Positions 9,542 to 59,490 of a stretch of DNA of 64,000 bases are shown here, piece after piece. Each line of letters starts with the position of its first letter. Position 1 is the stretch's first letter. The stretch comes from Polymyxa betae A26-41 (Eukaryota > Protista > Endomyxa: Phytomyxea). The position numbers were made by a program, and so were the translations under genes. The notes below the pieces were generated by a model. The model searched no databases. It was given only the letters and a program-made list of their open reading frames with translations, and was not told the origin of the DNA. The stretch spans positions 62,001 through 126,000 of the forward strand of contig RBZT01000781.1 of assembly GCA_003693705.1 (NCBI GenBank), given 5' to 3'.

Positions 9542-10438
9542 TTAAATAAAGGAGCGATAACTTCTGTGTGCCGGATCGATGAACGTGCAATCGGGGCAAT
9601 CGCAGCTTATCTGCCTGTTCTCATAGCGGACGTCTTCTGGCGGCATCTCAAAACTCCATAATGCTTCCATTAGCTTTGACATCGCATCGTCTAGCGTCTG
9701 CATCATGGCTGAGATGCTCTCAGGATCCGATTCGGAGGCATCATCATCGCCCCTTCGAGTTGATTGCACTGCATCAGAAACGTCGTCGCCATTCTCGAAA
9801 GTCGCTTGCAATACAGCGTCGTGCAAAGCAGTCGCTTGAACCTCACTCTTTAAGCGTCTGCCATTCGTAGAAAGCGCCTTCCCTGTCTCTGATACTTTCC
9901 CTTTCACACTCTGTGCTATACCAGTTATCATAGCTTGCATCTTCTCTGCCACAGTTTGCCGAATGGCAATAGCGAACGCCTCCTGAATGGCGCTAGATAG
10001 CGTCGCTTGCATCGAGTCGGGCATCTCCTGGTTGTTGAAGATCGCTTGCATGCTTGATATCACGTCCTTACTGGTAGACAAATCCTGGGCCATGTCTGAT
10101 CTATCGTTAGCAGAATGGGGTGATTGCGAAGGGGATCCCTCTCTGCTCTGTTGTTGCAGCTCGGGTTCCGGTGCCCCTTCGCGAAGCTTATGCGACGACG
10201 TGGCCTTCAACCCTTTCAGAAAAGCATCGCTATCTTTCAGCAAGCCTCGGAAGCTGGCCGATATTTCAGCCATCGACTCTCGCATCTCGGCTATCTGCGA
10301 CGACAAAGAAGACAGAGACGAAATAGGCGGTGTAGAGTCATCGGAAGCGCCAGCCTCTGATGTGGTGATCTCAGGAAGCTCCGGATGTGATGTCTCGGCA
10401 GGCATGACCTCGACCGAATCGCATGCAGAGGGCGCCAT
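9542..10438 (-). CDS. Hypothetical intronless helical protein with C-terminal CxCxxC
   Basis: 298-aa ATG ORF, acidic/Ser-rich with amphipathic helices, ends SCDCPDCTF. Confidence 0.7.
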   Translation of the reverse strand: MAPSACDSVEVMPAETSHPELPEITTSEAGASDDSTPPISSLSSLSSQIAEMRESMAEISASFRGLLKDSDAFLKGLKATSSHKLREGAPEPELQQQSREGSPSQSPHSANDRSDMAQDLSTSKDVISSMQAIFNNQEMPDSMQATLSSAIQEAFAIAIRQTVAEKMQAMITGIAQSVKGKVSETGKALSTNGRRLKSEVQATALHDAVLQATFENGDDVSDAVQSTRRGDDDASESDPESISAMMQTLDDAMSKLMEALWSFEMPPEDVRYENRQISCDCPDCTFIDPAHRSYRSFI

Positions 10439-10520
10439 CTCACTCTCGCAATCCGATTAATTCTCCCAACTCCGAAATGGCCTGTCTTGGCGAATATTCA
10501 GATTCCTAGTGAATATCAAT

Positions 10521-10630
10521 ATCGTTATAAATATGAAATTTCAGATATTGTAACATAAAACTGAAAATTGACATCGTTAATTATGAGTTTTCAGATGCTG
10601 TAACATAAAACTGAAAAATAAAATCGTTTT
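10521..10630. repeat. AT-rich tandem repeat, about 2.2 x 51 bp
   Basis: Units start with atcgtt at 10521, 10573 and 10623; shared core tttcagat..tgtaacataaaactgaaaa. Confidence 0.85.
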
Positions 10631-11118
10631 AAAATTTGAATTGGTCAACAGAGCGAAATACCATTAGGTTGAATAATTGAAGTATTGATAGTAAAGATTT
10701 ATGAACGTGATGCAGCTGTTTGTGGGCCGGATCGACACGTTTGACAGAATGGCAGCTATCAATCGTCAGCTTCGTGATCGCCCATTCCCTTTAGGAACTG
10801 GAGATCGAGGAATTAATGCATCAACTGCAATATCATAGTCTGCATTGATCATTCGTGTACAATACCAGCTTGCATTCACTCTGCTATGTCGTTGATTTGA
10901 GGTGACGCTGTTGCATTTCAGTTCTTGATGTTTGTTAACACGAAGAGTCGTAACTCCCAACCCAGATATGGCTGCGATCACAAATAGAAGAGTCATATAC
11001 TGGTGGCCATTTGAACAGTATTATGGAGCATTCAACGAATGTGTCGAGACTTCACGCTTCCATTCGCGTTTAAAGCGGGATCGAAAATTGCGAACGCGCA
11101 TTCATTCCAACTCAAACG

Positions 11119-11565
11119 ATGCAGAGAGACCTTGAATCGGCTGAGGATCGCACCGTAGTATTGTCGCGCGACAAAGCCCTGGTCCATTCTAGAATTAGCC
11201 AGCTAGAGAAAAAGGTGCTGGATTTATCCGATGTAGCTGCGTGCTGCTGATTTCTTATAGCTTGCTGCACAAAAAGTCGCCGTCTATGAAACAGAAACTG
11301 CAGTAAAACGACAACAAGTATCTATCGTTATTGGGAAGTATACTTTCAGATCCTAACTTCTTTGTTCTAGAATGTTTACGTCCGACGTAGAAACATTTTC
11401 TTCAGAACTAAATCCGAGGCAGCCGCTGTGCAGCAACAAAAAGGTACTTTGTTTCACCAATGACAATCTTTTCGCGTGACGAAGATCTCAGCGGTTTCTG
11501 ACAAGCTGGAAGAGCGATTAGGAAATTTGCAAGAAAGTGTGAAAGCCATGGATCACTTCAGCTAA
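11119..11565 (+). CDS. 99-aa beta-prefoldin-like microprotein (ASDURF-like), 4 exons
   Basis: Exons 11119-11214, 11261-11317, 11371-11443, 11492-11565; three GT-AG introns (46, 53, 48 nt) keep the frame; helix - VYVRRRNIFF hairpin - helix layout. Confidence 0.78.
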
Positions 11566-11619
11566 AACATACAATCGTTTCTCTTAATCTATATTATTAT
11601 ATATATATAATTATTGAAC

Positions 11620-13330
11620 CTAGTAATTCGTAATCGTTTCGAAAGTGTCAAATACACCAGGACCTGAAGAATCTGTCCTGCAAACACCAGCGCCTCCAGA
11701 GCAGGAAAAGTAGCAGTCTGTCGTGAGGACGAACTTTTTCTCAATATTGGAACGGAATTCTTGCAGAAATACGAACAAGACTGATACAAGCCGCATTGGA
11801 TAAGAATCCAAATCAAAACGAATCAAGATCGAGGAATCCGATGGGAGTGACTTCACTTCCGTAAACAGCTTGTCGAGGTTGAGTCCCACGTCTCCATCGA
11901 CGTTCCAGGTCGCGATTTTGAATCCATGGCTGGTCACTTCCCGGGCACGACCATTGTCGAATTCACCAAAAGGTGGTCTGAGCTGATTGAAGTCAGTCAT
12001 GTTTGCGGCTCCAACGCATTGCTCCAGCCAATCCCTTGATTCGGTGAGTTGGAAGTCAATCTGCTGGGCGGTCATCGCTTTCATTGATTCGCCATTCCAG
12101 CCGCCCAGTTGAATGGCGTGGCCGCGTTCCATAGCAAGCTTGACTTGGTTGCACGACTCAGATGAGCATAGACCTGGACGAATGAAGAACGTCGCCGGTA
12201 TATGTGCTGAATCGAGCTCTGCCAAGACTTCAGCAGTTGGCCAGCCATCAAATGTCACCGCAATGAGATTGGGATGCTTGCCGCAGTAATTGAAAGCGTT
12301 TAGGCCGCTAGAACCTTCAGCTAAGGTGCAATGTGCACCTGTCCATCCAACATCGCAGCGATCACAATTGTCTCCAACAACGTGATTGTTGATACAAGTG
12401 CATTGACCAGTGCCATTTACACCATCGTTACAAATTCCCCATTCTTTCTTGCAAGTACAGACTTGAAGGCAATCGGGTCCATAGCGTCCAGGAAGACATT
12501 CATGGCAATTACCGGCAAATCCTTCAGGGCAAATGCACTGCCCATCGCCATTGATTCCATCATTGCAAACTCCACGACCGCAATCACCACACTCAAACTC
12601 ACAACGAGTGCCATAGCGACCTGTAAGCACATTGAGCCCAGATCACACCACATATATAAACACCAACCTGCTACACAATCAGCACAATCCGGGCCTTTGA
12701 AGCCATCCGGGCACGTGTTGTCATCGTTGTCCACAATAATATCCACATGTTGCTGTGACTCGACTACGACTATTTCGAGGTCTGAACCACATCGGACATC
12801 GTGAGGGCTGGTGCAGTGCTGGAAAAGGATTTCCTCAGTTGACACGTCTTTGATGGAGTAGAATAAAGCGATGTTGAGGTTAATCGCCACTTTGAATGCC
12901 ATTTTAGCATCCTCAAGGGCCGAAGCGCCTTCGATATATATCCCGCCTTCCATAGTTTTGCTGATATAAGAGCTTGGCTGAGCTTTTTGGATTGCCTCAA
13001 GGATGCTTTTCAGCTGTTCGTCTTCAAGAGCTGGATCGAAAGAGACCAAATATTTCGGTGTCGAATAATGAGCAGAGGCATTCTTGGCTGATCTCGCCGA
13101 CAAATTTTTGGCGAGCAGGACAGCACCGATGACCACTGCTGAAACTACCAATGTTGCAACGACCGTCACAATGATAAACTGATCAGTGCATCAGACAAAT
13201 GCAGAGCGGAACAGCAATTGCGGCGAACCTTTTGACGCCGACTGTGTCCATTAACCTCTGAGCTGTGAACAATAACGACTGGGTCGGCATGGAAGCCTAC
13301 GGAATCGCGAGGCGATCTTATGTTGATCAT
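11620..13330 (-). CDS. Type II membrane protein with EGF/laminin-EGF-like repeats and a degenerate NodB/CE4 polysaccharide deacetylase domain
   Basis: Signal anchor FIIVTVVATLVVSAVVIGAVLL; repeats CNDGINGDGQCIC and CNDGVNGTGQCTC; CE4-like IAVTFDGWP, ATFF, RPPFG, WNVD; introns near 13179-13228 and 12622-12668. Confidence 0.82.
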
Positions 13331-14961: not shown

Positions 14962-16033
14962 CTAAGGAGCGCTTGCTGGAGCTTGACTCTGTGCTTTTCG
15001 TTTGAGGTATCGTTCACGGGCGGCTGCTGCTAATTCCTCTTTAGACGGTTTAGGTGGTGATGGGGCCCTTGCCTCAGATTCAGGCTTCACGTCAGAATCC
15101 ACAGCCGTAGATTCTTGAACAGATTCTTTACTTTTGCTTTCAGTTTTCGAGGGCTCTTGTTCGCGTCCTCTTTTCGTACCAATTGTGGGAGACTTTCTAG
15201 ATTCTGGTTGAGTTAAAGAGTTTGTTAAATTTTCGGATCTCGGTTCAGATAGATCCTTTTCCACAGACTTCTCTTCGACTTTCGCTACCTTGTCGGCGAT
15301 CACTGGTCCTTGATTTTCAACAACAGCTGCCGGCTGGCTTGACAATCGAGCAGCTTCTGGCTCGAGAGATGTCGGAGATGCAGGCGGCTCATTAAGAAGA
15401 TGAGAGAGAAATCCTCCAGCCATGCCAGCAATTGTCGGGCCTTTATTACGCCTATCGATGAGATCTTGCTGCGTTTGCCAGGCCTTATCTTTGATCATCT
15501 GGTTTTTATAACCGGAAGTAATGAATGCTTCTGTTTGCGAAAATTTCTCATCCTCAACAATGCGTTCCTTAACGATGTTTCTTTGGTAAATAACGGCTTG
15601 TTCTCGGTTACGTTCTTCGACTCGTTTAGCAACTTTATCGAAATATTTCGGCTTACTGCAAATCAGCAAAACTTTAAATCGCATGGTCATTCTGTTTACC
15701 TTACGATCGGCATCTGCACTTAACTTGGCAGCAATCTGGCCCCGTTTCTTTTCAGCCATAGACTCATAGACATCGTCATAGGCATAAACATTAGGATCCT
15801 CGGCGAGAAGCTTCACCTTCTCTTGCTCGGCCTAGACAAATGAAAACTTGCACTATAAAAATGAGAGAGTACACTGGAACCTTCTGCTTTTGTCGTTCGC
15901 TTTGCGTGGCGATCTGGGACGCGATCGTATGTTCGGGTTCGTCTTTAGGCTTTAACTGGTCAAAAACGTTAACAGCTGCAGTCGGTTTGTTGGACTTCTT
16001 TGTATTGAGGTTCAATCCATACTTGAGGATCAT
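14962..16033 (-). CDS. NSRP1: Nuclear speckle splicing regulatory protein 1 (CCDC55/DUF2040)
   Basis: LKYGL N-terminus, LAEDPNVYAYDDVYESM, AFITSGYK and C-terminal AAARERYLKRK. Confidence 0.88.
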
Positions 16034-44687: not shown

Positions 44688-44957
44688 GCGATCATGTCTT
44701 CTTAAGCGAAGAAACCTAAGCAAGATTGATATTATGGGCCTCATCTCGATTTGAACAGACGGTTTTCAGCTCTTCTGCAACTAAACGGCTGATTATCGAT
44801 CCAGAAGAACGCTTCATTATTTGCAAAGAGTAAAGAGTGGGGATTTCAAGTGGATTTTTCAACTCATTTCAGAAGCGCATGAAATATTGCGCCGCAGTTA
44901 GGTGAATTAGACGGGCGCACATTTCTGAAACTTTTTTTTAACTGCCATTTGCAGCGT

Positions 44958-47900
44958 ATGCAGCAGCCCGCCGTCAGCCATGACGACGATGCCCCTTTTC
45001 TCCATCCAGCCTTGGCTCTGGCTCTGCGGCTGATAGTAGCTGCCAAAACCAACCCTTCCGTTTCGATTTTGAAAGAAATAACATCACAACTCCAGGCGTC
45101 GCCGGTACCGGCCCCAGCTTCATTACTTTCCGTGGCTTTGCACCCGGCGTTGCCGCTTCTTGCTAAAGATCACCCAGAAGCGTTACAATATATTCAGACG
45201 TTAGTGAGGCTTTGCCCAGACCCAATACCGTTAGCGTTCTGGCCAACTGCTATTGGGGCTCTGTCTGCAGCATCACGGCGCCTGAAAAATGAGTGCTCTC
45301 GCCTCGATTGCATTCTTTTGATGCGAGCGATGTTCACACCAGCAGTCGGAAAACAGTTTTCTGACTCATCATTTTCTAGTCCTTTTGCTCATGTCGTCGG
45401 TGCTCTTTTAGAGACGACACGTTTGGAATCGCTGAAAGCGTTACGAGTTGCTGCTGTGGAGGCTATTGAAGCTCTCATCATTCATGTCGATGCTAAAGCG
45501 TTGACTCCAATAACCCCTGGTCTTTTGTCAGGCCTAGCGGCAGTTGCAGCGGGCGATTTCAAGTCTGGATCCAACGTTATCTGCAGTGCAATCCATTGCT
45601 TCACCTCAGTTATGCAGATTGTATTCAGTCTCTCACAGGATGATTCTTTTCGGTTTAATGCGTCAATGCTTTCTTCCAGTATTCTGCGAAGACGTTTTTA
45701 TGAAGGTCCAGAGCCAACTGCTCGTGTCCGTTCGTCCTTAGTTACTGCAGCCACAGCCTTGCTCAAGCTGCCTCTATGTGAAGAGGCTCGAGCAGCTTGG
45801 ATTGACTCTTTGCTTGCTCTTGCTGAGGACAATATTGTTGCTGAAGAAGCTCTTTCTGCTTTACAATCTGTGCCAGCTATTTCAAGTGGCGATCTTATGC
45901 GCCGCCTCTCTAAGATCTCAAAACCAGCACCTCGCTTACAGGACGTTCGATCTGCTATGAGAGCTATTCGGTTATGCCCTAGCTCAGAACTTGAAAATCT
46001 ATGGCGAACAGAGAAGGATAAAGTTTCCAGGATTCTCTCGAGCTTGGTTGCGATTGATACCCGTGCTGTAATAGCTTTGCAGCCGCGAACCATTTCTCGG
46101 TATCTTTAGCGTTTCTCCTTCTGACCTTTCTCTAATACTTTTGGTCAGATTATCTCCATACTATCAAATCAGCCTCTCCAACTTTCCATTGGTGCCTGAG
46201 GCTGCATTCAGTCTTGTAGAGACACTCATCCAATGTTTGTCTTACGATATGCTTGTTGATCTTTTCACAACATGCCTGGCTGAACCTGGTCCAACATGGC
46301 TGCTGATTGTCGATTGCATTATTCGGTCAGCGTCGGATTTACCGGCTGAAGTCTCCGATCGCATCATCAGTGATGATCTTTTTGCATTAGATCCTGATTC
46401 GCTAACAATATTGCTACGCTGCATTGGCTCTCTCGCCTTGCGTTTACGCGAAGAGTTTCGACCTCTGTTGCTGCATTCCCTGTTTCCAGTGGTACTCCTA
46501 ATCGCTCATTCTTCTCCAACCGTGTCGCAAGCTGCTTTAGCTACCGTCGATCGCATTGCTTACGCTCTGGATTATGACGGTTTTACTGCGTTGCTGGCTG
46601 ATAATGTGGACTATTTAGTGGATGCGATTTCGTTTCGTTTATCATCTCCGGATGCGCTCAACGCTTCCCGTTTACTCGAGCGACTTTTCTCATTTGAAAA
46701 TTCATCAACGTGCCTGGCTCCATTGTTAATCGACACGATTACGACCGTCATTGATTGTCTGTATGAGCCGAAACTTGACCCTGAATTGGCTCTGTCGTTC
46801 TTTCGTGTTCTGAATTTTGCAGCTCGAGCTCTCTTACCGGTTCCGAAGCGAGATCTTGAACAAGTCTCGACAAATGGTTGCTATTACGAACCTGAACAAG
46901 TGGCGATGAGGCTTTCTCACTCGATTTCTCGGTTTCGGAATCTTCGCAAGAGGAAGGACGAATTCGAAAAGAGTTTCGAATCGAATAATCGAGAAGAATT
47001 CGTTCCTCCGCACTTACAAAAGGAATTTGAAAACAGTAAAGTCGAAGGCATCAATGATGATGTTGATATTGATGACAAACCTGAATTAATTGATGCCAAC
47101 TCCATGGAGGCAAGCAAAAGTCAAGAACCATCAACGGAAATGAAAACCATCGTGCTGATTGTGGATCGTTGTAGACATTTCATTGAGACTCCAGATCTAC
47201 ATCATCGCCATGCTGTATTAGAGGTGGTCGCCTCTTGCTTACAAGCTCTTTCGTCCAGCTCTGAGCTACTTCTTCCTCAGGTACTTTGCTGCTTGTTCGT
47301 TGCTTTGTATTCGCCCACTGACTGAATCAAGGTTGCGAAAATCTGGGATCCTCTCAAATTGGCATTTAGCCCTAACAGTAGCAGGTTCGTTATTCAGAAG
47401 GCGCTTGATGTTGCCGAAGTTGTGGTATCTGTTTGTCCAGACTTTGTTGCCCATCGAGTATCAACAGATTTATGGCCAAGGTGAGCATATGTTTTGGTTT
47501 GACAATTCTTGAATAATCGATGATGCAGCATGAAAAGGGTATTGATTGCAGAGCAACGAACATTAGCTAATGCCTTAAATCCCAATGTGGTGGATCGAGC
47601 ATCTGTTGCTGCTCAAGGCCATGCTTTACGTTTGCTGTATTCAGCCCTGCGACACCCTACTTCCTGCAATAATATTATTGGAGAGATCGCCACTGTTATG
47701 TCGGCCTACCTTTCCGAATCAATGCCATCCGTTTTGCAAGAGGAAGCTCGGAAGCTGTTCAGTCTGATCTGCGACGTCGATCCTGATACGGCTTGGTGGT
47801 CTCTGGTATCCCTCATTTCGCCTTCTAATGTTCCAATCCCTAATAATTGTATACCTCTGCCCTTGCAATGGCATGCACCAAATCCCCGATTGTTTCAGCG

Positions 47901-56988: not shown

Positions 56989-59490
56989 TTAAATCCAGTA
57001 CATTTGGGCACCAGTTCGTTCTAAAACCTTGGGCAGAGCAGTGATCTTGAAGCTTTCTGAGCCCGAACCGGACCGGAACTCGTTCTCTTCACTCTGCGAG
57101 TGATAACGCGCTCGATCTGCGGCGAGGTGTGCATAATAGACGGCCGGAACGATCGACACGGAACGGGTGCACCGAGCATAAGTATAACATTGATGATAAG
57201 TGATGCCTTGCAGAAGGTCAGCAGTGAAATTATTCTCGTCGAAGATAACATGGTAGTGAGTTGGCCTTGAAGTTCCTTGGATACCACCATGTGAACATAA
57301 ATAAAAATCAAATTGTCGAGGATGGACGACAGAAGAATCGACAACAGTTCCAGCGGGAATATTGCCAGAACGATCTCCAGCAGACGCTTGGTTAACAAAA
57401 AAACGAGCATGGTGGCGCTTCTGTACTATAATGAAGGTAATTTTAGGGGTATACCCGGGCTCAAGATTATTGCAAGCATCTCGAAGTGCATTTAATTCAT
57501 GTCTCAAAACAGATTCAAACTGCCCCTCAGAAACGCCATCACGATAGAATAGAATGCGTTCTGGCTTCTTGCCTTTTGTTGCCGTATAAAACCGAATCAA
57601 CAAGGTCTTAGCCATGTTGTTGAGATCTTCTATGATTTCTTGGCGGGGTTTCTGGGCTCGAGTTTCACAAGCGTATTTTGATGGGTGGGCATCCATCGAG
57701 GCAACAACTGCAGCTAATGAAGGAAGCCTAGAAAAAGCGGCCCCGTGCGTAACATCAGCTCCAAATATGATGACAGGTTTCTTGAATAAAAGCTCATGTG
57801 AAGGCGATCGAGACAAAACGCTGTTGATGCCCCCAATCCGAGTGTTAATCTTGAGTAGGAGATTACCACAATACATCGGGTCTGCCTTTTGAAGATGCTT
57901 GGATTGCATACATTGGGAAGGTACATCCAGCACAGTGTCGCAAATACGCTTGATCTCACCATATGCGTTACTGTCACCAAATGGTAGAATGATTAACAGT
58001 AATTGACACCGAAGTTTTGAACTCTCGATTTGCTTGACAGCTTTTGTTAGCGCATCCTGGTAGCAAATCGTGCCCCGCCCCTGTGGACGACAAGGGATTA
58101 TAACTGGTCGCTTGAAAGAAACACCATGTTCCTTTGCAGCCCCGTTGAGAACAGAGAGGAAGTTATTCACTTCATTTTCGCGAACACGTTGTTCAAAGAC
58201 GACAACACCCCAGTTATCGACCGGCGGGGAAGAAACGTAGGAAGCATCTCTGGCTTGCCAGGCTCCCAGCTGAGGTTGTACAGTCTTCTTCTTGGATTGT
58301 TGGTGATAGGAGATGGTAGGAGGTTCCAACACACGACCATTAACCTTGACCATTTGCGCGTTAACTTTTAATCCAAAGTCTTTTACAACAGGGTCTTTGT
58401 CATATTCCCGTTCTTGCAAACATTTCGCGATATTCTCCATTCGCACATTCGGCTTTGTCGCAGTCTTCTTGATCATTGCAGCAGTTTGTGCAGGCGCTAG
58501 CTTCTTAGTGATTCGCTCGCCAGAAACAACGTGGCAAACCTCCATCGGCAGATATGTAGGCTTTTCTTTGGACCCTACTATCAATAGAGGAAGATGCGGA
58601 TGCTGCAGCTTGAGGTTGTAGCGCTCTTGAAAGTATTTAGCAACGTTCGTTGACCGGGTTTCGTTGTCTTCTTCAATAGTAAACTTTAGCTGCACAGAGG
58701 ATTCCTTAGCAATGTCACGAATCCTGTACTTTCGCTTCATATCGCCGCGATGGGTAACGGAAACTTTGACTCCAATTAGTTCGGATCGAAGAGCACCACG
58801 GCAAGATTCGTTAATATTGGCTAGTTCTCGTCGAGTAGCGGCTTTCACGAGGTCGAGGACAGGCTGCGCCCGATGAAACACTGACGCAGCGATGTCGATA
58901 TTAACCAGTAAACGGCCGTGTGCAGGACGGAGAGACTGGTGATAGCCGAACCAAATCTCAGACAAGGCATCAAGTGGGACAGTGTTGCGACCGGAAAAGA
59001 AGGAAGAGCCAAGTGAAATAAGCTTGCCAATGGGAGTCGATCGGCAGATGACATCTAATGCTTGAACACAGTCTTGAGGAGTATCAAGATTTCGTCCAGC
59101 TAGGAATTGATGAAGAGAATTCATTGGCACAACAGCGACATGCTCGATCTTAATAGTGAAACGGCTTCTACGATCAGGAAGATTAATGACCTCCGTTTTA
59201 GACGGCCATGGCAATCTGATGGGATAATACATCGTAGCCTCTCCGTCATAAGCCAGGGCCTTATTGCCTTCGAAAAAGTTTTTCTGTTTGTGAAGGACGT
59301 TCATGATCTGGAGATTGGCGGCCTTGGGAACAGACGGTGTTATCTGCACATTGTACATGTGAAAGTCGGCATTAGGGATAGAAGAAACCTCGAAGAAATT
59401 GGCAGTCAAGCTAATGGGTTTGCCTGCCTTACCGACGCCAGGGCGCTGAGGCATGGCGTTGGGGTTGAAAGTATCGGGCGAAGTCGTCAT
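56989..59490 (-). CDS. AGO: Argonaute (AGO clade; N-PAZ-MID-PIWI), intronless CDS
   Basis: 833-aa ORF; GYHQSLRP, YLPMEVC, GADVTH, RQEII, YRDGVSEGQF, QKRHH, GTSRPTHYHV and YYAHLAA give an intact D-E-D-H tetrad. Confidence 0.98.
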   Translation of the reverse strand: MTTSPDTFNPNAMPQRPGVGKAGKPISLTANFFEVSSIPNADFHMYNVQITPSVPKAANLQIMNVLHKQKNFFEGNKALAYDGEATMYYPIRLPWPSKTEVINLPDRRSRFTIKIEHVAVVPMNSLHQFLAGRNLDTPQDCVQALDVICRSTPIGKLISLGSSFFSGRNTVPLDALSEIWFGYHQSLRPAHGRLLVNIDIAASVFHRAQPVLDLVKAATRRELANINESCRGALRSELIGVKVSVTHRGDMKRKYRIRDIAKESSVQLKFTIEEDNETRSTNVAKYFQERYNLKLQHPHLPLLIVGSKEKPTYLPMEVCHVVSGERITKKLAPAQTAAMIKKTATKPNVRMENIAKCLQEREYDKDPVVKDFGLKVNAQMVKVNGRVLEPPTISYHQQSKKKTVQPQLGAWQARDASYVSSPPVDNWGVVVFEQRVRENEVNNFLSVLNGAAKEHGVSFKRPVIIPCRPQGRGTICYQDALTKAVKQIESSKLRCQLLLIILPFGDSNAYGEIKRICDTVLDVPSQCMQSKHLQKADPMYCGNLLLKINTRIGGINSVLSRSPSHELLFKKPVIIFGADVTHGAAFSRLPSLAAVVASMDAHPSKYACETRAQKPRQEIIEDLNNMAKTLLIRFYTATKGKKPERILFYRDGVSEGQFESVLRHELNALRDACNNLEPGYTPKITFIIVQKRHHARFFVNQASAGDRSGNIPAGTVVDSSVVHPRQFDFYLCSHGGIQGTSRPTHYHVIFDENNFTADLLQGITYHQCYTYARCTRSVSIVPAVYYAHLAADRARYHSQSEENEFRSGSGSESFKITALPKVLERTGAQMYWI

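Follow-up and report, generated by a model that had tools for sequence, protein, structure and literature searches.

A candidate four-exon microprotein gene of Polymyxa betae that may encode an ASDURF-type prefoldin subunit

Introduction

Does a stretch of Polymyxa betae DNA between two genes hide a small, intron-rich gene that a list of open reading frames (ORFs) misses, and, if so, could the product be a prefoldin subunit of the type known in humans as ASDURF? A reading of the sequence without database searches (hereafter the sequence-only reading) proposed exactly such a gene. Here, we follow up that proposal with coding statistics, homology searches, and a survey of prefoldin genes in the same genome. 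All coordinates are positions in the window, i.e. the whole 64,000-nt stretch of DNA that was analysed, and the candidate gene is on its plus strand.

A helix, a short beta-prone hairpin, and a second helix within about 100 residues are the defining layout of beta-prefoldins. Human ASDURF (UniProt L0R819), the ASNSD1 upstream ORF (uORF) protein, belongs to the prefoldin-like module of the PAQosome, in which it is proposed to take the position of the canonical beta-prefoldin PFDN1. A protein of the ASDURF type is expected to be small, at about 96–116 aa; PDRG1, which is related to PFDN4, has about 130 aa.

The human ASDURF protein of 96 aa is encoded by a four-exon uORF of ASNSD1 (PMC10187264), and the peptide EYQEIENLDK is part of its sequence (PMC11781309). 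ASDURF both co-elutes and co-purifies with URI1, UXT, PDRG1, PFDN2, and PFDN6; a predicted structure of the protein can be aligned with those of beta-prefoldins. It is a subunit of beta type in the prefoldin-like module (PMC11009110). The masses of ASDURF and PDRG1 are 11.25 kDa and 15.5 kDa, respectively (PMC11009110 supplements). Additionally, a free-standing gene of Arabidopsis, At1g49245, encodes an ASDURF orthologue that was recovered with UXT and URI by AP-MS (bioRxiv 10.1101/2023.12.13.571423; PMC10893143).

Gene model and locus

The candidate gene would occupy a 1,181-nt gap between two minus-strand genes, and its features are listed in Table 1. The four-exon model of the sequence-only reading is arithmetically consistent: the exons sum to 300 nt (96 + 57 + 73 + 74), a multiple of three, running from an ATG to a TAA at 11563–11565. 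Its exon-by-exon translations could be reproduced as well, giving 99 codons, with one split codon (G|CG) that yields Ala76. The three introns, described there as canonical and 46–53 nt long, indeed measure 46, 53, and 48 nt, and all are GT..AG. Branch-like motifs (CTGAT, CTAAC, and GTGAC in introns 1–3) lie 13–17 nt before the AG; CTAAC in intron 2 is a textbook branch motif and is followed by a T-rich tail. Intron 3 holds an in-frame TGA, so that read-through of this intron is impossible. The nearest upstream in-frame stop is at 11071–11073, 16 codons before the ATG, and an earlier ATG is absent.

The divergent upstream neighbour is a minus-strand gene starting at 10438. On the other side, the candidate ends 54 nt from the stop of a convergent, unrelated gene, so that no ASNSD1-like frame follows downstream. 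The locus is single-copy in a DNA search of its own genome, in which no second, processed, or paralogous DNA copy of the candidate was found, and no Rfam family was matched in the gap. The divergent intergenic region upstream of the candidate contains an AT-rich stretch (10500–10700; GC 25%), inside which lies a tandem duplication of two 50-nt units (10528–10628; 84% match).

Table 1. Features of the candidate locus (window positions) and prefoldin genes found elsewhere in the same genome.
Feature	Location	Strand	Description
Intergenic region	10439-11118	.	No long ORF; presumed promoter and 5' leader, shared with the divergent gene
Exon 1	11119-11214	+	96 nt; 32 codons from ATG; N-terminal part, proposed helix 1
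Intron 1	11215-11260	+	46 nt, GTGCTG..TATAG; CTGAT 14 nt before AG
Exon 2	11261-11317	+	57 nt; 19 codons; end of proposed helix 1
Intron 2	11318-11370	+	53 nt, GTATCT..TCTAG; CTAAC 17 nt before AG
Exon 3	11371-11443	+	73 nt; 24 codons and 1 base; proposed beta-hairpin and start of helix 2
Intron 3	11444-11491	+	48 nt, GTACTT..GTGAC..CTCAG; phase 1
Exon 4	11492-11565	+	74 nt; 2 bases, 23 codons, and TAA; proposed helix 2
Spacer	11566-11619	.	54 nt, AT-rich; from candidate stop to stop of convergent gene
Convergent gene	11620-12630	-	EGF-repeat / polysaccharide-deacetylase protein
L001			PFDN4; best solved-structure match, E = 1e-11
L002	G000:C32		PFDN2; best solved-structure match, E = 9e-9
L003			PFDN6 (weak assignment); best solved-structure match, E = 0.28, top hit
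L004			PFDN1 (weak assignment); best solved-structure match, E = 0.046, top two hits
L006			PFDN3; best solved-structure match, E = 2e-16
L008			PFDN5; best solved-structure match, E = 5e-7
L007	G000:C271, ~71.1-71.8 kb		Third alpha-type prefoldin gene, on the minus strand; complete, ~158 aa, four exons by eye

Coding signal

Whether such a model exceeds chance was judged against dinucleotide shuffles of the 1,181-nt gap. Loose rules allowed at most three GT..AG introns of 42–62 nt each; strict rules additionally demanded a donor of the form GTR and, close to the 3' end, a TRAY motif. A spliced ATG-to-stop ORF of at least 99 codons occurred in 85% of the shuffles under the loose rules and in 22% under the strict rules. 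In-frame splicing by itself is thus not evidence of a gene, and these frequencies speak for the possibility that the candidate is a chance spliced ORF in an intergenic region that is never translated.

Codon usage is more informative. Codon log-odds were derived from 28 long ORFs of the window and other loci of the genome, 9,929 codons in total. On this scale, exons 1–4 score +4.2, +4.1, +3.5, and +4.7 bits, and none of the five other frames of any exon scores as high as the proposed one (in exon 2, the runner-up reaches 3.7 bits). The total of 16.6 bits lies within the range of genuine coding windows (13.9 ± 8.3) and well away from that of non-coding frames (−1.9 ± 7.2). When the longest strict-rule ORF was taken for each ATG, none of 300 shuffles reached this value. 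Under the most conservative null, which takes the best score of any strict-rule spliced ORF on either strand, five of 400 shuffles (1.25%) equalled the score of the candidate (p ~0.0125). In the real gap, the top-scoring strict-rule spliced ORF is exactly the proposed four-exon model, at 16.7 bits; the best result on the minus strand under the same search is 4.9 bits. A separate minus-strand ORF of 122 codons (11056–11187 joined to 10766–10999) was rejected, its codon usage scoring 3.7 bits. Once each intron is charged an arbitrary 6 bits, the four-exon model is not selected, because its exons are short and contribute only about 4 bits each. Overall, the coding signal is of moderate strength.

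The same procedure was applied to control models anchored on HMM-hit exons of the known prefoldin genes of the genome. These genes have three or four exons, introns mostly of 47–57 nt, and 0.16–0.28 bits per codon, compared with 0.169 for the candidate. In an unsupervised set of ORF-bridging introns from the genome, good motifs are enriched at 45–54 nt. As their size and motifs match those of both the control and the ORF-bridging introns, the introns of the candidate are typical of this genome; intron 1, at 46 nt, belongs to its modal size class.

The case for a chance ORF accordingly has two sides. A coding p-value of about 0.01 is not overwhelming and is lost under a stiff per-intron penalty, no search found a homologue (see below), and the locus is unannotated. 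Against this stand the agreement of all four exons with the proposed frame, the top rank of the model in the real gap at a score that so few shuffles equal, and introns that resemble real ones. Likewise, a gene-free gap of 1.18 kb would be unusual where neighbours lie 54 nt apart, and the proposed helices are free of Pro and Gly, the C-terminal one being heptad-periodic. We therefore regard a chance ORF as unlikely and consider it probable that an unannotated protein-coding gene of some kind is present. The earlier claim of a hidden microprotein gene is supported statistically by codon usage, by the size and motifs of the introns, and by the fit into a gap of a compact genome; the splicing itself we infer.

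Prefoldin genes elsewhere in the genome

If the gap does hold a gene, its interpretation depends in part on which prefoldin genes the genome encodes elsewhere. Scanning of 27.1 Mb in 1,001 contigs identified the genes listed in the lower part of Table 1. The size of the genome, its short introns, and its chitin-deacetylase genes fit Polymyxa betae, a plasmodiophorid. The sequence-only reading had suggested looking for separate canonical beta-prefoldins, and these are indeed encoded on other contigs (PFDN1, PFDN2, PFDN4, and PFDN6, with weak assignments for PFDN1 and PFDN6). The best model of the PFDN2 gene requires one intron of 128 nt, some 2.5-fold the modal length in this genome.

Besides PFDN3 and PFDN5, there is a third, distinct alpha-type gene (L007), the introns of which measure 47, 47, and 51 nt and carry CTGAT, CTGAT, and CTAAT, with one GTC donor (all by eye). 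To our knowledge, UXT and URI1 are the only extra alpha-type subunits, and URI1 is large. Since the product of L007 is small, we call it UXT-like, a name given by size, by elimination, and by presumed likeness to human UXT. A third alpha-type gene leads one to expect a prefoldin-like module and, with it, two extra beta subunits, PDRG1 and ASDURF. URI1 was not identified in the genome, where one further locus (L009) is a weak match only, and PDRG1 was not located there either, which leaves the argument for ASDURF by elimination incomplete.

Two PIH1-domain genes are present (G000:C3:6246-6413 and G000:C597:58172-58572). A search of the whole genome detected no RPAP3_C domain, which exon splitting or real loss could explain. 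Within the window itself, TTI1 is encoded at 44949–47325 on the plus strand by two neighbouring ORFs, which between them carry the N-terminal, central, and C-terminal Pfam domains of TTI1. TTI1 (TELO2-interacting protein 1) is part of the TTT complex, which works with R2TP.

Product architecture and homology searches

The predicted product of 99 residues has neither Pro nor Gly in its proposed helices and a central VYV-RRRN-IFF stretch. The proposed C-terminal helix (residues 64–97) shows a heptad (3.5-residue) hydrophobic moment with p = 0.011 relative to shuffles; for the proposed N-terminal helix, the heptad signal is not significant (p = 0.32 relative to shuffles). By eye, the spacing in the hairpin—an aromatic residue, four residues, Asn, and three hydrophobic residues—equals that in the hairpin of the genome's own PFDN2. 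The product may thus be called prefoldin-like, a label that reflects its architecture and not a homology statistic.

Homology searches were performed exon by exon. No Pfam family was matched at E ≤ 10, and a scan of the own genome with Prefoldin_2 (PF01920) listed five other places and not the candidate locus. The gathering threshold of Prefoldin_2 is 27.6 bits, which single exons of 19–32 aa cannot reach on their own. Among solved structures, the sole match was that of exon 4 to a generic coiled coil, that of coronin (E = 0.38). A stop-free stretch of 58 codons around exon 1 gave nothing in a word search of 5.8 billion proteins, a collection in which the proteome of this genome is not represented, and had no relatives in metagenome contigs. 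An exact look-up of the alpha-tubulin of the genome confirmed its absence from the protein collection, and blank searches of that collection consequently say little.

These results bear on the possibility that the gene is real but has nothing to do with prefoldins. Its product would then be a small coiled-coil protein confined to this lineage or drawn from another family of small helical subunits, and the VYV..IFF stretch would be just a hydrophobic patch. Such a protein would account equally well for the coding signal, and it would agree with the lack of any link between the exons and Prefoldin_2 or a prefoldin chain in the searches, with the generic character of the coronin match, and with the lack of a relative of exon 1 in the protein collection. 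However, significant family matches are impossible from exons this short in any case. Moreover, the succession of helix, beta-prone hairpin, and helix in about 100 residues is the layout of beta-prefoldins, the hairpin spacing is shared with PFDN2 (by eye), and the extra alpha-type partner makes extra beta subunits expected. On balance, an unrelated coiled-coil protein is unlikely.

The genome's own beta subunits were compared with the candidate as well. A search of the genome with pieces of its PFDN1 and PFDN4 did not detect the candidate as a paralogue, and pairwise comparison of each exon with the beta subunits of the genome gave only noise relative to a shuffle null. The scores of exons 3 and 4 were marginally better with PFDN4 and PFDN6 than with PFDN1 (p = 0.02–0.04, uncorrected, in 16 tests); for exons 3 and 4 against PFDN4, p was 0.042, also uncorrected, which amounts to noise.

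Comparison with known subunits and proposed role

Human ASDURF and the candidate are of similar size and organization (96 aa and 99 aa, respectively, each from four exons), and the proposed helix–hairpin–helix layout of the candidate is beta-prefoldin-like, as is that of ASDURF. The VY...NIFF hairpin motif presumably falls at about the same residue numbers in both, and the hairpin loop of the candidate appears two residues shorter than the human one. The two differ in genomic context: human ASDURF is a uORF of the ASNSD1 mRNA, whereas the candidate is stand-alone, with no ASNSD1-like frame downstream. In this respect it resembles At1g49245, both being free-standing small genes in non-animal eukaryotes; of the two, it is the Arabidopsis gene that is backed by interaction data and a phylogeny.

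Canonical PFDN1 has the same overall layout as the candidate and, judged by eye, resembles it in the second strand and at the point where the helix begins. The PFDN1 gene of this genome is nonetheless at a separate locus, and the C-terminal helix of its product is about 13 residues longer than that of the candidate. Like ASDURF, PDRG1 is an additional beta-type subunit found only in the URI/UXT module, the role proposed for the candidate as well, but it is larger (15.5 kDa, about 130 aa), and the 99 aa of the candidate do not fit its length. The size of the candidate therefore favours ASDURF over PDRG1.

Alternatively, the gene could be beta-prefoldin-like but of another type, encoding either PDRG1 or a copy of one of the canonical beta subunits that arose by duplication in this lineage. 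Two observations would suggest this: of the two extra beta subunits that are expected, PDRG1 was not located elsewhere in the genome, and exons 3 and 4 score marginally better against PFDN4 and PFDN6 than against PFDN1. That difference becomes noise after correction, though, and a DNA-level paralogue is absent from the genome. In its length of 99 aa, of which the C-terminal helix would take up about 37 residues, the candidate is also nearer to ASDURF (96 aa, 11.25 kDa) than to PDRG1 (15.5 kDa). We consider both variants together very unlikely.

We assign a probability of roughly 0.4 to the reading that the candidate is a real gene for an ASDURF-type beta subunit. Since genes for all four canonical beta subunits lie at other loci, an extra subunit is the likeliest role for the product. 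According to this proposal, splicing out of three short spliceosomal introns would leave an mRNA encoding 99 residues, and the protein would fold as beta-type prefoldins do, with a short beta-hairpin (VYV-RRRN-IFF) between a long helix and a second one. Within the prefoldin-like (URI/UXT) module, to which it would belong as an additional subunit of beta type, the putative ASDURF orthologue would contribute its hairpin to a central beta-barrel shared with UXT, URI, PDRG1, PFDN2, and PFDN6, while one coiled-coil 'tentacle' would be made up of its two helices.

Evolutionary implications

The sequence-only reading held that a distant ASDURF orthologue with no ASNSD1 downstream would point to an ancient eukaryotic subunit and to a derived bicistronic arrangement. 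This idea is not new, as the stand-alone At1g49245 of Arabidopsis has already been published, and for the same reason confirmation of the candidate would leave the current picture unchanged. What would be gained is a wider range: the ASDURF-type subunit would extend to a third eukaryotic supergroup, strengthening the view of an ancestral module, and one gene would be added to the poorly annotated genome of a crop-root parasite.

Tentatively, we suggest that this may be the first ASDURF-type subunit to be recognized in Rhizaria and that, together with the UXT-like gene, it may indicate that the last eukaryotic common ancestor (LECA) had the full six-subunit module with ASDURF as an ordinary gene, the animal uORF being a later capture. 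If so, the prefoldin-like module is older than the divergence of the SAR group, plants, and opisthokonts. The locus would also illustrate how microprotein genes divided into exons of 19–32 codons slip past both ORF finders and domain scans.

Other genes of the window

An ORF at 14962–15816 on the minus strand encodes a protein resembling NSRP1 (nuclear speckle splicing regulatory protein). Among 5.8 billion proteins, it has one relative only at E ≤ 1e-5, with 24% identity, which indicates that the lineage is poorly represented in that collection. This sole match, on an unrelated AT-rich metagenome contig, was also followed for synteny, as the ORF is a neighbour of the candidate, but its surroundings there hold nothing similar. 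Farther along the window, an intronless gene at 56989–59490 (minus strand) encodes an argonaute of 833 aa with the full ArgoN-L1-PAZ-L2-Mid-Piwi set of domains.
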